From contig JAHLWZ010000277.1 of NCBI GenBank assembly GCA_020536535.1, positions 1 through 64,000 of the forward strand: DNA of 64,000 nucleotides, in the 5' to 3' direction. The notes beneath the pieces are model-generated. The model saw only the letters and a program-made list of their open reading frames with translations, was not told where the DNA came from and did no database searches. Of the stretch, positions 1 to 30,800 are shown in pieces; the stretch's first letter is position 1, and each line of letters starts with the position of its first letter. Position numbers and translations under genes: made by a program. The DNA is from Pelomyxa schiedti (taxonomy: Eukaryota; Protista; Evosea).

Positions 1-3000
1 CCCTACAAAACCCAGCTCCCTTCATGTACCTGGTAACTTTTCCAAGTCCTAATGAACATTAGTTTCATAGTTTCATAGGAAAGCTGCCAACCCCCCAAAG
101 CACAAAAAAAGAAATTGCAACCCCTCAATCTTCCGGTGTTGTTTCAGTCTCTCTTTCCAGTATTACTACAGTAGAACACATTAAAACTTCAATTCCACTT
201 ACTGCTGCACAAAGAGAGGACAATCAGAGAAAAGCATGTCTTCCAATTTTACAGGTGCGAGATGAGTTCTGTCTGAGACTCCTCAAGGAGCATGTCATTG
301 TATGTGTTGCGGAGACTGGATCTGGGAAAACAACACAGCTGCCACAATACTGTGTGAAGCTGTTAAAAGAGTCCTCTCAAGTAGGGATTGTAGTATGTAC
401 CCAACCACGAGCAATTGCCTCGATTTCTGCTGCAAAAATAGTGGCAATGGAATTTGATGGGTGCATTCCAGGCCAATCTATTGGTTATGAGGCAGAAGGA
501 ACAAGTATCCAAGGCAGTGAAATTGTATTTTGTACTGATACCTGTTTTGTTCGCAAAGCTTCGGGCAATCCCCTTCTGCAAGGTTTGACAGTGTTGTGTT
601 CTATCTGTATTGTGTAATATGTCAAGTGAGTATTAAGTACTATAACCATAGGCTCTTCCTCTAACCTGAGAAAACTAAATCAAAGGGGTTTCTGTTGTGA
701 TCATTGATGACGCGCATGAACGGTCTCTCCATACTGACATTGTTCTTGGGATATGCAAACAAGTGCGAAAACAACGAACCAAAGATTTTTATATTGTGGT
801 GGCTTCTGACATGATTGATGAATCCGCATTCCTGTCATTCTTTGAGTGCACGTCACCAGCAATCAAGGTTCCTAGTACACAGTTGCAGGTTACCCTTGAA
901 TATATCCCACCACAGTCACTGCCAGGGGAAACAAGTAACGAGGTGGTCAGTATAAATAAACTTATTCGAAATCATATCATACCCACAGTCATAGCGAAAC
1001 TCATTCAATTTCCCACTGGAAATGCTCTTGTTTTCCTTCCAGGACAAAGTGAGGTGGAAAAAGCTATTCAGATATTTAAACAGCAGAAACCTCCTCAAAA
1101 AAAATGGTCTGCCCTGCCCCTCTTTGGATCGCTTCAACCTAAATGGCAACAACTTCTATGTTTCGAGGAGAGAAAACCAACAGATAAACGGCTCATTATT
1201 TTCTCCACCAATGTGGCAGAGGCTTCCTTGGCTTCTGGTAGGATACCCTTGGTGTTTGACTCTGGCCTGGAAACCGAGTTAGTATATGACTCACCGAGAA
1301 ACATTACAGTGCATGAACTACGCTACATCTCTAGTGCTTCGTCGGAGCAGAGAAGGGGGATTGCTGGAAGAGCGCGCAATGCTCATTGTGTAAGACTTCA
1401 TGGGAAAGGGGCAATAACAAGACAATCCATTGAACCTGAGATATTGCGCTCCTCTTTAGATTCCATTGTACTTCAATTGAAAGGAATGAATCAAGACCCA
1501 TTGGCTTTTCCTTACATATCTCCACCACCTCGCCAAAGCTTGGTAGATTCCATTTCTCAGATGGCGCGCCTCCAACTTCTGGACTCATTGGGGCAAATAA
1601 CACCCCGAGGCATCCTTATATGCAGTCTTGAGTTCGAACCACGCTTGGCCAGTTTTGTACTGGCAATAATGGATAAGCAGCCTAGTTATCTCGACACTGC
1701 TCTTATTATATCGGCCATACTCAGTGTTCCTGGCAGCATTTTTTTTATGGATGATAAGTCAGACCGATTTGCAGTAAAAGGAAATATGAGCTCTTTTGAC
1801 AGTGACCTTCTCTTCCTGCACGATGTTTATATCCGTTGGTGTCAGGCCGGTCTCACCGTCAACGGTAATTGCATCACTTGTAAGAAGCCCTCCAAAAAGG
1901 CTTTCTGCCAGTCCTGCCGCCCTTCATTCTCCTCAAGCAATGGCCTCAACAGTAAAGTACTGACAGCTGTAGAGTCACTTATTCAAACCACTAAATGCAC
2001 TCTCTCAGGGCCACAGCTCACTGAGGCACCTCAGCTTCCTGTCGCTACTGTGCCCTTCAACAAGTCTATAACTGAACTCATTATTTCTGACAATCTTAGT
2101 GGTCCTTTCCTTGACAAACTTGTGGAGGTCTTGGTTCCCCGTTCCCCTGACAAGGGTGTACGCATTGTAAGTCAAGAAACCAGGGCCAGTATCGCCTCTA
2201 CCTCATGTGTTCTCCAGCACCATAGTGAATCTCGCTATTACTTGGCTATGAAAATAGTCAAACTTCCAAGTGGACAATACTTTGTGGATCAACTTCACCC
2301 AGTTTCTGAACAGACTCTGTTGAAATGTGACAGTACGTGGTGCAGTAAGCATGGTGTTCCCTCAGTGCCGTATATGGCTAAAGAGTGGCCAGATGTAGGC
2401 TATGTATTTGAAAACTTGTGCCAAGAGAAGTGTTCCCCAAGACAAGGAAAACCAGAGAGGTGGCACACCATAATCCATGACAATGCCAGACATACTCTTA
2501 AACTTTTTTGTCCTGAAAAATTTCGTTCAGAGCTAATTGCAGAGGTGGAGCAGTGCATAAAAGAAGAACAAATCAATATGAGTGCCTTCAAAACCCAATA
2601 TGTGGTAGGAAATGGTGCAGCACGTGTGACTTTTGGTCAAGGCCTTACAGTATCAGATGTTGCCTTGATAACAACAGAACAACAGTTCACATTTGATCAC
2701 CTCCCAGCTATTTCTAATACCCAGGATTTTAAACAGTGGGTCTCTAATGAGTTGCACCTATCAGAAACTGAGATTGGTTGGTGCAAGTTTGACACAGAAA
2801 AACGCAGAGGGGTCCTCCTTTCTTCCGACCTCCCTGTTACAGTCAGCAAAATTCGTACCAATTACTCCAAATGGCAGAGCTCCCATCTGGGTGCTCTTAA
2901 TAGTGCAACTAATCTTACAATCTCTGCAAGGGAAGATCATTACGGAAAGCAAATTCGGGCTACAACAAATGCAACGTTTACCTGCGAACAAGTAATGGCT

Positions 3001-22590: not shown

Positions 22591-24054
22591 ATGGGGTTGA
22601 ACCGTCGGGCTTTTCTAGCCACGGCAGTTTGTGTGCTGGTTACAGAGGTATCCATCGCAGGATGCAGCCAGTCGACGTCGACGTCGCCGTCGTCGTCGTC
22701 ATCATGGCCAAGCGCGGCGGGGAGCGGCTCTTGCCCGGACCCCGAGGCACTGAACGGTGCGCCGCAGATAACCGCGTCGTTCGGGGCGATGTCGCTAGCG
22801 GCGAGCATGTTCGTGGTCACGTCGGTGGTGGCGTCGGGCGACTACGTCTTCGGCCCTTACTTTGGCGTGATGATGCTGTCTCTCAGCGACGCCGTCAATT
22901 GTGCTTCTTTGGTTGCTTGCTGTTTTGCTTTGCTTTGTTTTTACTTTTGTTTTTTTTTTTTTTTTTTTTTTTTCCTTCTGTTTATGTGAGTCTTGCGTCA
23001 AATCGTTGTATAACAACTGTTGCTGAGCAGCTCATGTCGCAGTATAATGCTGGAAACTGCTATGTATGCAGTGCAGCTGGTTTTTTGAACCAACTTTCAA
23101 GTGTTTGTGGCAATTTGTGGATGCTATTCATTGCAATTACTGTGTGTGTGAATCTTCTTACTGTACCCACTTTACATTTGAATGACACTGTTTTCACTCA
23201 GGTACCAGCACCTTCGCGCTTGCTTCCCTAAATACAGCTCAGCTTCGTCCTTGCTCTCAGTCCAAGTGTCACGACGTAAGTCAGTCGGCCGAAGTGCACT
23301 CTATTATGTAATTTCCAGCTTAGTTATTTGGTGAGACCTCCTTTACCGTTGTGACCACCATTTAATTTGTAACTTTCCCAAAGGGGTGCGTCGACTGTCA
23401 CCGCCATAATACCACTCACTGGGTATGATGATATGGAGTATGTAAAAGGGAGTAGTGGCATATGTTGGCTCGGACCAGACCCAGCACTGGCTAGATATGT
23501 CCTGTTTTATATTCCTCTGGTAAATCTTAAAGGGACTTTCTGATGGTTTGATATTCCACCTTACTTCTCTAGTGGATACTCATCACAATCATTCTTGTTT
23601 TGTACTTTGTTACATTCGATTTTGTATCTGTTATTCCACCAGATGGGCCAAAATATCAGGTATCGTGGCTGCAAGCCCAAATTGTATCACGACTCACCAC
23701 ATGTGTAGGTGAAGCGAGTCAGACCAAGATTGTTTATGTTCCCTCTCACTATGTTGATTGTATTTCTACCCTGCACACTGAACAGGGTATGCGAAAGCTT
23801 TGGTAAAACCGTGTGGGTTCTGGAATACATGCAAGCCAGTGTTTTGCCTCTGTGGGGGTGTGTATCAGCATCAAACCACTCTCTAAACCAAAAGCAACAC
23901 AAACCAAAGGTTCATTGACGCGGTCGTGTACTTCTTCTGTAAATTCCGGCCTATTGTTCACACGCGGCAAATGAGAGACACCTACAACCCGTCCCTCTCC
24001 ACCTTCGAAAACCTTCAAGAACGCATCAAAGTAATCATTCGCGTATTCTACTGA
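22591..24054 (+). CDS. cAMP-receptor-like (CAR/Crl-type) 7TM GPCR module, possibly spliced onto the downstream Rab
   Basis: Signal-like N-terminus, then seven hydrophobic segments after splicing: MSLAASMFVV, LSLSDAVN, GFLNQLSSVCGNLWMLFIA, YYVISSLVIW, ICWLG..LFYIPLW, RLFMFPLTMLIVFLPCTLNRV, LWGFIDAVVYF. Confidence 0.85.
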
Positions 24055-24117
24055 AACATCTGTTTTTATTCTATTTCCTTCCTGTCTCCTAGAAAGCTAA
24101 ACGAATCAACCGCCGAA

Positions 24118-25091
24118 ATGTCCAAGTCCATCAAAGTCATTCTGCTGGGCGACACTGGTTTCTCAGTGTTTGCTGTTGTTGCCTGCCGCACTTCGTTTTT
24201 TGTTGCTTAACAACAAATACCCTTGTAATTTGCAGGGCTTAACAACATCAAACACAAAAGGGGTAGGAAAGACCTGTCTGCGTGATTTGCTTATCAGCCG
24301 CCCCAGAGAGAACGACCCCGCTTCGACGATAGGAGTGGAGTGCTGCTCTGTCTCTTGCACGACGCCTTCGGGGAAAAACCTGCAGATTAATGTCTGGTGC
24401 GTTGGCGCGGTGTATATTATACAATTATGTGCACATCTCGTATCTGTTGTGAAAGTGAATGCAGTAAAGAGGGCGCTGCGTTATATGACTATTATGTACA
24501 ATTCAAACTGATAGTGTGCACAGGGATACTGTATTGCTACTTTCCATTGCATAGTTTTTGATCAAGCTAAAAAAAACTAACCTAGGCAGGGCAGGAGAGG
24601 TTCCGTTGCACGGCAGCGACTTATGCACAGGGAGCCCACTGTGTGTGCTTTGTTTATGACATTACAAGGTCTTATTCTGTTTTTTTCCATCCTCTAATTA
24701 ACTCTTATAGGAGGGAGACTTTCACACACGCTCAATCTTTAGTGGTACGCTCTTCTGTTTCCTCGTATGGGGGTTCACTTATCTGGTAAAACAACAGGCT
24801 TGTGTGAGAAGTGCGAGTACTGATTCCGTAGGCATATTAATTGGAAACAAATTGGATCAGGAATCGCACCGAGCTGTCTCCGAGCATGAAGCCATCGAAT
24901 TCGCTCAGACTAACCATTTGAACATTTTTGAAACCTCTACAAAGACCGGCACCAACATTAAACTGGTAAAAATCTGCCTTTCATGGAAAGCAGCCATGTC
25001 TAACGCATCTTCTTTCTAATAGCTCTTTGACATGATTACCAAAGAAGTATTTTCCTCTCCCACTATAAATCTTCCTGACGGTAGCAACTAG
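24118..25091 (+). CDS. Rab-like small GTPase module lacking C-terminal Cys prenylation motif
   Basis: Spliced G1 GDTGVGKT, G2 STIG, G3 WDTAGQERF (7-nt microexon 24524-24530), VYDIT, G4 GNKLD, G5 ETSTK. Confidence 0.9.
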
Positions 25092-26073
25092 GAAACCACA
25101 AATATGGAAAGACTTTCCCAAATCCCTTCCGAAGATGTTTCTATTGACGAAAATGGATGTGTGGTTGTGAAGCTACCAGCACAAGATGGGGTGTATGCAT
25201 GCGGTTGGTTACTGGGGCCTCCTGCATCTGAAATGTGGTATTGGGCCCTAAGATTTGTTCGCCTATCCTCGTCCAAATCGTGTGACCTTGAATCCATTGG
25301 ACATGTAAACTACGTCAAGGTCCTGAGAGGAAGTGTGGAGGGTATCCCTGATTTGACTCCACTCAGACCTCCTTTTTGTGTAAGAAACACGCTATTCCAA
25401 GGTAACTTACCTACTTATAAACGGAAGTACATCACTTAATGCACATGCAGGGCACACCCTTGTAGCCGGGCCCAAGGGGCTGCTGGCCCTTGTTCTCACA
25501 GCGTCTTCATCATGTCCGCAAGCCATTCACTCTCCAGAGCAGCTTACATTTACGCCTATGGGAAGCAAATCAATACCGATTGGAGCGGATCCCTTGGTGT
25601 GGCGGCATGTGAAGGATGCTTTCCCTGCATGGGGTGGTGCATTTGATGGCAGGAGGTTCCATCACTCTGGCGTCATTTCCGTATGGGAGGGTGGCGTGAA
25701 AGTCTGCTACGTTCGCATGTGGGCGGCAGGCATTGGCGTGGATTGCGGAATTCATGATCACTCTGACCTATCACGTGACACCACTTTTTGTGAGGTGCAC
25801 TTTGCATTGCACAGTGCTGGCGGGAATGGTGGCATGGTGTGGTTCTCTTCGTACAATGGCGCGGAGCACCAAGTTCCTTTGTGCCACCCCGGAGATGAAC
25901 ATGGAAGGTTTTGGCTAGTTGAAGGCAGTGGTGACACTGAGCTGCCACGACTACGAAGCAATGGTGGAGTGGAATATGTGAGGCACAAGTGGGACTCTGG
26001 TACCGGAACAGGAACTGCCATGGATGTGTGGATCGCCATTGAGTTCATGCCAAGTTTTCTCTACGGTAACTGA
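25092..26073 (+). CDS. Aldos-2-ulose dehydratase (AUDH)-type cupin region, probably the C-terminal part of the Rab protein
   Basis: MWAAGIGVDCGIHDHS, FCEVHFAL..AGGNGGM, EHGRFW, VEYVRHKWDSG, DVWIAIEF match the AUDH cupin pattern as recognised from memory. Intron 25402-25450 joins the two ORFs in frame. Confidence 0.7.
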
Positions 26074-26140
26074 GGTACGAAAGATAAGCCTTGTCAGTCT
26101 CAACCTGCGTTCGGATTTGACTCTTTTTGTTTTTTTTCTG

Positions 26141-26548
26141 ATGGCGTCAGTGCCGACTGTCGATGCCAGCGATTTTTGTGTGGTGCTTGTTACTGCGGGG
26201 AGCGATGAAGAGGCAAATACGATAGCACGCACGTTGGTGGAAGACCAGCTCGTGGCCTGTGTCAACATCGTTCCGGGCATCAGATCTGTATACATGTGGA
26301 AAGGAAGGGTACTACTCGCCCTAGTTACTCTGCCATCGTGGCTTCTCTAATTTTGTGAGTGCCTGTGATAGTTGGAAACCGGCAACGAGATTCTTATGAT
26401 CTGTAAAACGAGGCGCAGCCTGTTTGAGCGTGTGGCCGCACGCGTGACGCAACTGCACAGCTACTCTGTACCGGAAGTGATCTCGCTACCACTGGCCAGA
26501 TCTTTAGCTCCGTATGCCAAGTGGCTTGGCGACATGACTTTGCCTTGA
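26141..26548 (+). CDS. cutA: CutA divalent-cation tolerance family protein
   Basis: VVLVTAGSDEEANTIARTLVEDQLVACVNIVPGIRSVYMWKG, intron, then EILMICKT...LHSYSVPEVISLP...YAKWL. Confidence 0.93.
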
Positions 26549-26722
26549 TCCAAGATCTTGGATCGTTGATTTTGTTCACACCACCTGTATGCGCAATCTT
26601 GTGCTCGCAAAATAAATAAAGAAAAAAAAATTTAAACATGTGAAGGCGTACTGGAGTTTTTGGCATGTCATTTTACAAAGTTGAGTTGTCAAAACTGTTT
26701 ATTATTACTAAGTAAGACAATA

Positions 26723-27704
26723 ATGTTGTATCAGGTGAAGATGGTGCTGCTTGGCGATACTAGTAACTGGCCTTTTTTCTGTGTGTGCGTTTCCACTCAA
26801 GATCTCACAGATGTGGGGAAGACTGCATTGGTGCAAAGATTTGTCCACAACTTCTTTTCCGAAAATGTCCCTAGTACAGTTGGTGCCTCTTACTTTGAGA
26901 AGAAAATGTGGGGCCCTTTCCCATTGTAGCCTCTTTCATTTCACCTCAACTCAGGTTTGTCGACGGCGTCGGCTTGAGTCTCCAAATATGGGACACGGTA
27001 TGCTCTTATACAAAGTGATCTCTGTTCACATTTCCTACAGGCTGGACAAGAAAGGTTTTAATACTTTCACTCTTCATTCAGTAACTTGTGTTAGATTTCG
27101 TTCACTGGTACTCCATAGTATTTACTCATTGTTTTCTAAGACTCTTGTAAAGGCCCCAATGTACTATCATGGCGCACATGCTGCTCTTCTAGTGTAATTT
27201 CTAAAATCTTACGGAAAGTCTCACAAAAACCAGATATGATAGCTCCTCTCCAGCATCTTTTTCCAAGTTGAAGGAATGGGCAACTGGTTTGTTCCCTTTA
27301 TTGCCTCTGCATTAATGATTTCCTAGAGATAAAGAATAATGCTCCAGATAACATTGGTAAGACCAACGCTCACCCTTTCCCGATTCATCTGTGGTACAGT
27401 TATATGTGTAGCTGGTACCAAAACTGATCTAGTACCCACTGCCGTTGAATGCAAGGAAGATCTGGATATTCTTATGTACGAGGCAGAGAGTTTTGCTAAG
27501 GAACTGGGCGCCTATTTCTCACAAACCTCCTCTAAAGCGAACACAGGTTGCTTCTCTTTTCCCCACCTTCATATCCTAAATCCTCGCCAAGGGGTGGAGG
27601 AGACTTTTTCCCAGCTTGCTCACGGCGTAGTGGAACGCCACAACTTGGCTCCCAACGAGACCCTTGTTTCCCTTCACCAAGTCCGCACCCCGACCTGCTG
27701 CTAG
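26723..27704 (+). CDS. Rab5/Rab22-like small GTPase
   Basis: GDTNVGKT, STVGASY, WDTAGQERFRSLAPMYY, C-terminal CC. G4 reads TKTD. Many short introns with 13- and 14-nt exons. Confidence 0.9.
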
Positions 27705-27832
27705 ATTTTCCTTGAGCCACAACAACCCACACTTCCATTTCCAATTGGCACCACACAACGTTAAGTAACAGCACTCTAACTAGTAGCAAAATGTTTCCTT
27801 CTTGTTCTTTTGGTACCAAATTATGTTTGTGG

Positions 27833-30800
27833 TTATGCATAATACCAGGGGGGTGTGAGGTGGCCTCTTATGGCTTGGTATTGTTCCTCGGTGAATTGGT
27901 CTTGGAATAGCTCCCAGTTGCATTGGTGTGTTTTCCAGAACGAACGGAAACACTCCGTAACTGCGTTACCCAATGGAGGGCGTTCAAGTCCGTGTTGCAT
28001 GAGAATCCCCACTACACGCGGGAAGTGTTCTGGCACAATAAAGGGCTCCGACATTAGAATGGCTGTTAGAACAGTCAGGACTTTCTGAGAGGTTGTGTGA
28101 AGGCTTACCGGCAAGCCCAAGAATGCCCCCGTGACGTATTTCTAGAGTTGCGTTCTTGGAAAATTCTTCAAATTCGTCGATCAGTGTCTTGAGTAGAGCT
28201 TTTTGTGGAGTTTAGAAGTCGTAATAACACATTGAAAACAACACTACATCTTGAAAACATAAAATACAAATAAACCAGGGTCAGTTGAAAGAGGTATTCC
28301 AGAAGAAAGACATCTAGAAATATTCGCAGCTGCTGTTACATGTACTTCAAGTTGCTTGTCTTTCAACATCTCAATGGTGAGCTTTAAACTATAAAGAGGA
28401 TGAACTTCACACAAAAAAGGCAAAAGGTACTATTCCAATGCATTCTCATTGGTAATTGTGTAGGCATAATTTGCAATAAGTACACTGGCAAATAGGGACA
28501 CCCACCGTCTGCGGTGCCAGTTATCTGAAGTGAGAGCTTGTTTCACTTCACTTACTATAGAACTAAAAGAGTACAAGGGTTGCATATCAACAGGGACGGT
28601 GTTCTAATATAAGTTAGGATCAAGAGCAATGAGTGCTGACAGTACATTAGCAAGGAGTATCAGGGCATCTCGTGCCAAATCAGCCACCTCTTGTTTTGGG
28701 GCAGCTTGTATTGCAAAAAGAGCAATCAAGAGTTCATGAAATATGGGTATAAAGGAATTAATCCATCCAGTTTGACTGGAGAAGTATCTGGGTTTGAATG
28801 TTAGAAAGGAAAGAAAAACTGTTCAGGAAATCCGTGTATGATGCATACACGAGATTTATTAGTGATGTAGCTGCATCACTTTCTGGGGATTGTGCAACTA
28901 TGTCACAGAGTGATCGAGTAACTTTCAGAACAGTATTTAGTACTTCAGAGTTCTGCGTTTCAGATTCTCCTAAGTAACATCAGTGCCCGCAACAAATCGA
29001 GAAAAGGAACACTTTTTCGTGCTCTGAAAGGGCATACAACAGCAAGAGTCTGTGATAACAAGAATGCTGCTTCAAGTCTGATGGATTTGTATGGGTGCAA
29101 CAGACAACGATTAATCTCTAGTTGGGCGCTTGGTAAAAAAAAAAAATAAAAGTTGCACAGACCATTCTCAGTTATCAACGCGGAGAAGATGGCTGGTTCA
29201 CATGTTTCAACTACCATTGATTGGAGGAAATTCAGATGCCGTACAACGGCTCTAAATGATTCTCCATCACAATGAGACATCAGCTCATTGAGCGCTTGTC
29301 GGAGAATTTCCACTAACCAGTTAATGCTTGCTAGGCTTCTTCCTCTCACAATGTACTGAACACAAGATGCCCATATTGGCCACGCAGAGGGTGTGGCTGC
29401 TTCTAACAGGGAGGAAATATGACTTACCCACCATTCGTCGGGTTTCACAGATTTTCGAGCCCTGATAACTCCAGCAACAACCTCTGCAATGAAGCACTGC
29501 CTAGACTCTTCTTCGTCTGTTGCCTCAGATTCATTCTCCAGTGTTATCACTAGATCCACACACATTTGCAAAAACTGCTCGCCATGTCGGCGGACAAGAG
29601 CTTTGAAGAGTTGTGCATTGATGGCGTGAAATTGGTCACTGACAAGACCTGTCAGCGTAGGCCAGCTAGAGGATAAGTACTTGGTCAGTCCAAGCAGCAA
29701 ACTAGCCATCGAAAAAGAAAAAGTTAGAGAGGTGCCGCGGAAGATGAAAAAACCTTCCAAAATCTTCCATATTTTCTTTGGTTGGATCCAGCAACCCGGC
29801 ATCATTTCCTTCTTGCGAAATTGACATCCGAGATTCAATAACGGCATGTGCAAACTCTTCCAAGTCTAGACTGTCCAACAAATCTTCATCATCGTATTGG
29901 CAGTTTCGAACCATGCACAATAAGCCCAGTGTGGATAGAAGGAGGCAATCAGAAAACTTGCTAGTGATTCCTTTTGCAAGCCACTGTATCCAAGGAAGTG
30001 GTAGCTTATCGGGAGCCCAAGGAAGAAACAGGACAAACCAAAGACAGGAAAGAATCTCAAAACGCCAATGGTCACTTCTGGGGCTGAGAAGGGTTTAAGT
30101 GTTTTTTTTTTCCCCCTTTTCTTTACCTTGAGAGGATATCCATAATGTGTCTGTAGGTGTCAATATCTCTTGATAACTGTTGTTCCAAATGTTGACGAGC
30201 GAGGGTGATGGTCTTGATATCAGAAAAATTGTTTGCGACCTCAGCCGCAAATGGTGGCAAGTGTAACGGCTCGACAAAAAGTGCAATGCTATATGTACGG
30301 AGTAGCCTCATGAGATGTTTTGTGGTACGCTTTTGGTCAAGCTCGTTGGACTGGTATAGGGCAGCTATAAAGTCGTGAACGTGTTGCCAGTTATCCAAGA
30401 TAGTGTACTGTATGAAAGTTTGCAAGATTGCACTGAGAGGAGGAAAAAACCTTCAATCTGGAATTATCAATGAGTAAAACTGCCGCTCCCAAGGTCCCAC
30501 CTTCCTCGTTATCCTTTGTTGGGGGTTCAACAAGTTTTTTCAATGTCTGGCTAACAAGAAAGTCGGGTGGTTCACATAATCTGTCAATACACTGAGATAA
30601 AGCATAGCATGCCTCGTTTCCAACCGAGTCATATGCACCAGTGGCAAGGTCCAGAAGGTCGGACATTAATTTACAACACAAGGGATCCGTGGTAGTGCAC
30701 ACTTCAATGTGAGAGCGGTAAACACGTGCCAAGTGTTGTTGGTAGAGTCGTTGCAGAAGCAGTATTCGGGGTACAGGCTCTCCTTGAATATATATTCGGT

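Follow-up and report, generated by a model that had tools for sequence, protein, structure and literature searches.

A Rab-AUDH cupin fusion gene in Pelomyxa schiedti, most likely flanked by separate 7TM receptor and CutA genes

The window analysed here comprises 64,000 nucleotides (nt) of DNA from the anaerobic amoeba Pelomyxa schiedti (GenBank assembly GCA_020536535.1, contig JAHLWZ010000277.1, positions 1 to 64,000) and carries, between positions 22591 and 26548, four plus-strand modules that a sequence-only reading had joined by in-frame splices into a single receptor-Rab-cupin-CutA polypeptide. The modules themselves were borne out, the Ras/Rab, AUDH_Cupin and CutA1 domains by Pfam and the seven-transmembrane (7TM) protein by Atlas language-model features, as were the gaps between them: 63 nt from the receptor stop codon (24052-24054) to the Rab ATG at 24118, 12 nt from an in-frame TAG (25089-25091) to an ATG at 25104 at the start of the cupin module, and 67 nt from the cupin stop codon (26071-26073) to the CutA ATG at 26141. 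A single chain through all four was not supported, since among the three joins only that between Rab and cupin was confirmed by RNA contigs. The region most likely consists of three tightly packed genes, namely a stand-alone CAR-like 7TM receptor, a fusion of 474 amino acids (aa) between a Rab-like G domain and an AUDH-type cupin (AUDH, aldos-2-ulose dehydratase/isomerase), and a stand-alone CutA.

The genome searched was the P. schiedti assembly of 52.4 Mb in 5337 contigs, for which the genome paper gives an average of 7.43 introns in each gene and describes models refined with transcript data (PMC8887013). Our own spliced models were searched exon by exon, joined models being used only for frame checks and local alignments, and whole-protein searches were performed with NCBI's own models as queries. 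RNA evidence consisted of contigs from three single-cell runs, all of one sample, together with one DNA-like run, placed on positions 22990-28000.

The structure of the fusion gene was evident from several lines of evidence. A 45-nt GT-AG intron (25047-25091, plus strand) removes the in-frame TAG between the Rab-like and cupin modules, and the corresponding joint, 25046>25092, was noted in two RNA runs (X1 and X2) and in a cDNA contig (L009); because it appears in two runs, Rab and cupin are read as one transcript. The join foreseen by the sequence-only reading was likewise upheld by the NCBI model and by an ortholog described below. Our spliced model is identical to the NCBI protein KAH3764499.1 (474 aa), which NCBI has named RAB14. 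Residues 1-164, the Rab-like G domain, are encoded at 24118-25046 on the plus strand by exons 24118-24157, 24261-24396, 24524-24530, 24586-24668, 24711-24744, 24798-24965 and 25023-25046. The third of these, confirmed by RNA, is a microexon of only 7 nt that, as in the ortholog, encodes the G3-box residues WDT. RNA contigs confirmed most Rab introns, and the first (24158-24260) was taken here from the NCBI model and the ortholog, not from RNA. Residues 165-474, the AUDH-type bicupin, are encoded at 25092-26073 on the plus strand, with an intron at 25402-25450 and the true stop codon at 26071-26073. The gene structure as modelled is very probably correct.

The same fusion was present in a second organism. 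Among 1.84 billion representative sequences, the second-best match to the cupin lay on a metagenome contig (L010) of another intron-rich eukaryote, in which a Rab-cupin of 471 aa is encoded with no internal stop. Seven introns are common to the two genes at the same positions and in the same phases, with the microexon included (L010:9134-9140), and the join intron is absent from the ortholog, where a continuous exon runs across the Rab-cupin boundary. Identity between the two proteins was 39% for the Rab part, 26% for the first half of the cupin and 55% for its catalytic half, and the ortholog cupin stops at the same place as that of P. schiedti. The ortholog has a start ATG of its own, preceded by an AT-rich spacer, and lies head-to-head with an upstream EF-hand gene; neither a 7TM protein nor a CutA was found in its 20 kb by searches with a receptor-family profile and a CutA sequence. 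Judging from its introns and the cupin tree, the L010 organism may be an archamoeba, perhaps another Pelomyxa. An apparent GC donor was noted at the ortholog intron that precedes the microexon. The same contig carries, at L010:13628-14650, a member of a very large Sel1-repeat family with 174 matches in the P. schiedti genome.

All five G1-G5 boxes were present in the P. schiedti G domain, and C-terminal prenylation cysteines were absent, both as the sequence-only reading had stated. No cysteine occurs in the last 10 residues of the protein, which ends in the cupin, and tail cysteines are lacking because the chain runs on into that domain; the earlier idea that fusion to the 7TM protein supplies a membrane anchor for the Rab is thus superfluous. 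The best PDB matches of the G domain were Rab14, Rab2 and Rab4, with an E value of about 1e-31 to Rab14, and the 60 best PDB matches shown were without exception Rab/Ypt or GTP-binding entries of that size. With these matches and no tail cysteines, the domain appears to be Rab-derived rather than a canonical Rab, and the RAB14 label is a best-match name rather than a subfamily assignment. Because the alignment contained few Rab rows, AlphaFold modelled this domain with low confidence.

For the cupin, the match to PF18637 reached 90.6 bits against a cut-off of 25. The C-terminal 310 residues were modelled by AlphaFold as a bicupin with high per-residue confidence (pLDDT), the best fold match being AUDH (4A7K, 4A7Y and 4A7Z; E 2e-18), which was also the only PDB match by sequence. 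The codons for the conserved metal and catalytic residues H369, H371, E382, H384 ... H446 lie within 25753-25986 on the plus strand, and these residues aligned with H630, H632, E639, H641 ... H709 of AUDH 4A7K and were nearly invariant across 43 alignment rows. This His/Glu set of AUDH is said to have been identified by Claesson et al. in 2012 as the metal site for the isomerase step that converts ascopyrone M to microthecin. Model and alignment strongly support a predicted bicupin fold in which the His/Glu metal site of AUDH is complete. The beta-propeller dehydratase domain of AUDH (PF22301) was not found in the Rab-cupin and occurred on other P. schiedti contigs only.

When 61 cupins were placed in a tree, those of the two Rab fusions paired with each other (support 100/93), and the AUDH cupins of Archamoebae lay beside this pair, a placement that was weakly supported (98/65). 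Two near-identical P. schiedti loci, at C1098:8613-13407 on the minus strand and C373:27237-31985 on the plus strand, encode GH31, the AUDH beta-propeller and the AUDH cupin in this order on one strand and are approximately 47% identical to Mastigamoeba m51a1_g9193; from this domain order, both loci likely encode a one-chain anhydrofructose pathway. Other partners of the cupin were also noted. In Mastigamoeba balamuthi m51a1_g5751, an AMP-binding and NAD-binding reductase resembling carboxylic acid reductase is fused to an AUDH-type cupin, and in two bacterial proteins such a cupin is joined to mannose-6-phosphate isomerase, in one of them with a transaldolase as well. No Rab domain was found in the other AUDH-cupin matches returned from the 1.84 billion representatives, among which metagenome gene fragments could hide more, and the cupin part, when used as query in a word-index protein search, returned only the protein itself. 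A separate arrangement was seen in run SRR22746131, from another organism of 61% GC, in which a Rab-VIT-VWA fusion gene (L012:3-1889, minus strand) lies head-to-head with a stand-alone AUDH cupin (1916-2809, plus strand) at a distance of 26 nt.

Upstream of the fusion, the 7TM receptor occupies 22591-24054 on the plus strand, most likely as a separate gene of approximately 359 aa, with a hydrophobic signal-like segment at its N-terminus and its own stop codon, as indicated by RNA joints, our model, NCBI model Pelo_3604 and a paralog. Its introns lie at 22912-23030, 23144-23201, 23331-23383, 23520-23572, 23660-23708 and 23858-23909 on the plus strand. They were confirmed by RNA contigs, the first being visible only as an RNA loose end, with mapping begun at 22990. 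Pelo_3604 terminates at the receptor stop codon. At the second intron (23142-23201) the donor is not fixed but shifts inside a GT repeat, such that run X1 uses 23144, in frame, and run X2 uses 23142, with a frameshift and an early stop at 23229. Similarity of Atlas features to CAR/GCR1/GPR157 clusters (scores 0.92-0.94) provides a lead and not an alignment, and 10 of the 10 best named receptor matches in Atlas share family or clan. No Pfam family exceeded its cut-off over the receptor; Git3 and GPR_Gpa2_C fell below theirs and Dicty_CAR was not matched. The receptor, too divergent for the Pfam thresholds, would be an ordinary member or look-alike of a CAR/GCR1/GPR157-like family that is expanded in Pelomyxa. 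At least 10 paralogous receptor loci were found in the P. schiedti genome; a word-index protein search with the receptor recovered a single paralog and no ortholog from another species. The closest paralog has the last intron in common with the receptor, and its last exon aligns across all 47 residues, both proteins ending in FY-stop at the same position. Contigs C774 and C1824 carry near-identical copies of this paralog, one with an intron shorter by 2 nt, which may reflect allelic variation, recent duplication or redundancy in the assembly. A Rab on the same strand behind the receptor was found at none of 14 fetched paralog loci, in which set one contig ends too early for judgement and two loci, obtained from the Dicty_CAR search, show little or no similarity to the receptor. 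Tight packing was seen at another paralog, which is followed on the same strand, after approximately 120 nt, by a dehydrogenase-like gene.

Downstream, CutA (26141-26548, plus strand, 114 aa) appears as a separate gene with a predicted intron at 26309-26371 and no RNA coverage in the three runs. CutA1 (PF03091) scored over its cut-off, the two exons spanning profile positions 1-97 of 99, and this was the sole CutA found in the P. schiedti genome. It is followed on the plus strand by a second Rab-family gene (approximately 26723-27760), also with no RNA coverage in three runs.

The explanation that we consider probable for the region as a whole combines these three genes with a Rab-cupin that serves as an isomerase placed or gated by its G domain. 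The protein would be soluble and unprenylated, and its bicupin would act as a metal-dependent isomerase of an anhydro-sugar intermediate similar to ascopyrone M, in an anhydrofructose route that is apparently run in P. schiedti by the two GH31-AUDH genes. A dehydration step would not be expected of it, because the beta-propeller is missing. The N-terminal G domain would serve, in cis, either to localise the enzyme or to gate it, the enzyme being docked through Rab-type partner binding instead of a lipid anchor. As to origin, the probable course of events is duplication of the cupin segment in an AUDH gene of Archamoebae, followed by its capture behind a Rab gene. Taken separately, activity of the metal cupin on a substrate of the AUDH type is moderately favoured, whereas a soluble anhydro-sugar isomerase placed or gated by its G domain through protein contacts in lieu of a lipid anchor is put forward tentatively, and nucleotide-dependent gating by the G domain is offered with the same reserve.

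Several points weigh against this explanation. The RNA evidence consists of contigs, which lose rare isoforms, and comes from one sample; positions 24013 to approximately 24350 are uncovered by RNA contigs, so that the receptor 3' end and the Rab 5' end are unseen; and the gap between receptor and Rab contains an intron-like pyrimidine tract and no AATAAA. The ortholog G domain is degraded, with Ser in place of the G3 Gln, NQLE in place of the G4 NKxD and an altered G5, and therefore argues against a conserved switch, and the Rab-cupin fusion is known from two species only, the second via a metagenome contig. A splice from receptor to Rab (24030>24097 or 24127), whether predominant or confined to a minor isoform, would yield a receptor-Rab-cupin chain of 823-833 aa, in which a receptor would be united with a small GTPase of its own and with a metal enzyme that acts on sugars; this would constitute a new signalling architecture. 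Frame checks agreed with the sequence-only reading in that the proposed plus-strand intron, itself unsupported, has its donor at 24031 in frame with acceptors at 24096 and 24126; AAG acceptors are in use elsewhere in these genes, the gap with its pyrimidine tract measures just 63 nt, and the reads are compatible with such a splice. The first AG past the tract, however, belongs to the TAG at 24092 and does not keep the frame, as that reading had also noted. In-frame GT..AG bridges do exist at the module joins but are no more frequent than expected by chance, at least one (intron of 35-130 nt) having been obtained from 64-68% of random trios of open reading frame end, shuffled gap and open reading frame start; for this reason a bridge carries little weight and was dismissed as evidence of fusion. 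Receptor RNA contigs stop at 23903, 23947 and 24012, before the donor, and coverage resumes only near 24350 or beyond. This break between the two genes in three of three runs is a weak argument against the splice, as a coverage hole proves nothing either way. The join is contradicted by the receptor C-terminus, since splicing would remove a segment that is conserved with the closest paralog, and by the ortholog Rab-cupin, which has no receptor upstream; NCBI's transcript-aided models also keep receptor and Rab separate. Fusion of receptor and Rab is accordingly very unlikely, and 24031-24126 most likely comprises the receptor C-terminus, its stop codon, the 63-nt intergenic gap and the Rab start. 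Splicing of CutA onto the cupin (26065>26151) is more improbable still, to the point of being negligible. An in-frame bridge exists at this join too, but contig L009, which has the 25046>25092 joint, is unspliced through every candidate donor near the cupin end, retains the stop codon and ends at 26083, just 17 nt beyond the donor; no RNA was placed over CutA although the cupin end was covered in three of three runs, the ortholog stops at the same place without a CutA, and the genome's only CutA would be the fused one.

Given three genes, the role of the G domain may be viewed differently. The Rab domain could be a decaying passenger or scaffold, left when a cupin was captured behind a Rab promoter, and the enzyme unregulated. 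The Rab halves are 39% identical as compared with 55% for the catalytic half of the cupin, the ortholog has lost the G3 Gln and the G4 Lys and Asp, and elsewhere the same cupin occurs alone or with unrelated partners (reductase, mannose-6-phosphate isomerase, GH31). Against this, the G domain has stayed full-length in both species despite deep divergence, its P-loop, its switch threonine and DTAG being retained, and P. schiedti has kept all five G boxes; a mere passenger seems rather unlikely. Less likely again is a cupin that serves as a sensor and not as an enzyme, binding sugar or metal to tune the Rab and so tying carbohydrate state to membrane traffic. Such a role would suit a protein in which a switch domain and a ligand-binding fold are covalently linked, and, with two complete AUDH-type genes already present in P. 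schiedti, a further isomerase looks redundant; against it stand the retention of the entire catalytic His/Glu set, the degraded switch of the ortholog and the absence of a lipid anchor. An isomerase with a G domain that places or gates it is the reading that we prefer.

No description of a fusion between a GPCR (G-protein-coupled receptor) and a Rab, or of one between a Rab and an AUDH cupin, was found among the literature search results listed. The novelty of the present findings is modest and lies in the joining of a G domain of Rab origin to a cupin of metabolism, conserved in two amoebae, the pathway, both domains and the NCBI model being already known. As a small, presumably soluble protein, the Rab-cupin lends itself to the question of whether an enzyme of sugar metabolism can be gated or positioned by a GTPase. 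It is also a further sign of an anhydrofructose route in Archamoebae.

Comparison with known systems sets the fusion apart from its neighbours and relatives. The downstream flanking gene is an ordinary member of CutA1, and the upstream receptor differs from Dictyostelium RpkA, a GPCR-PIP kinase fusion in which a 7TM region is followed by a C-terminal catalytic domain (PMC3206951), in that it most likely ends unfused at its own stop codon. With Rab GTPases such as Rab14, Rab2 and Rab4 the fusion shares the G1-G5 boxes and recognisable RabF-like stretches, but it has neither a hypervariable tail nor C-terminal cysteines, its RabF motifs have diverged and an enzyme domain is attached. Large multidomain Rabs such as Rab44 also carry a Rab domain in a longer chain; the extra domains of Rab44, however, are reported to be N-terminal (PMC8016136), whereas here the G domain comes first, a metabolic cupin follows and there is no prenylation site. 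The archamoebal GH31-AUDH and reductase-cupin fusions (Mastigamoeba m51a1_g9193 and m51a1_g5751 and the two P. schiedti loci) have cupins that neighbour those of the Rab fusions, with weak support, and share the metal site, but their partners are metabolic enzymes and not a GTPase. Finally, Phanerochaete chrysosporium AUDH (PDB 4A7K, 4A7Y and 4A7Z; PF18637) has the same bicupin fold and His-x-His...Glu-x-His...His site as the Rab-cupin, in which the beta-propeller dehydratase and C-terminal lectin domains of that enzyme are absent and a Rab-like domain is found at the N-terminus instead.

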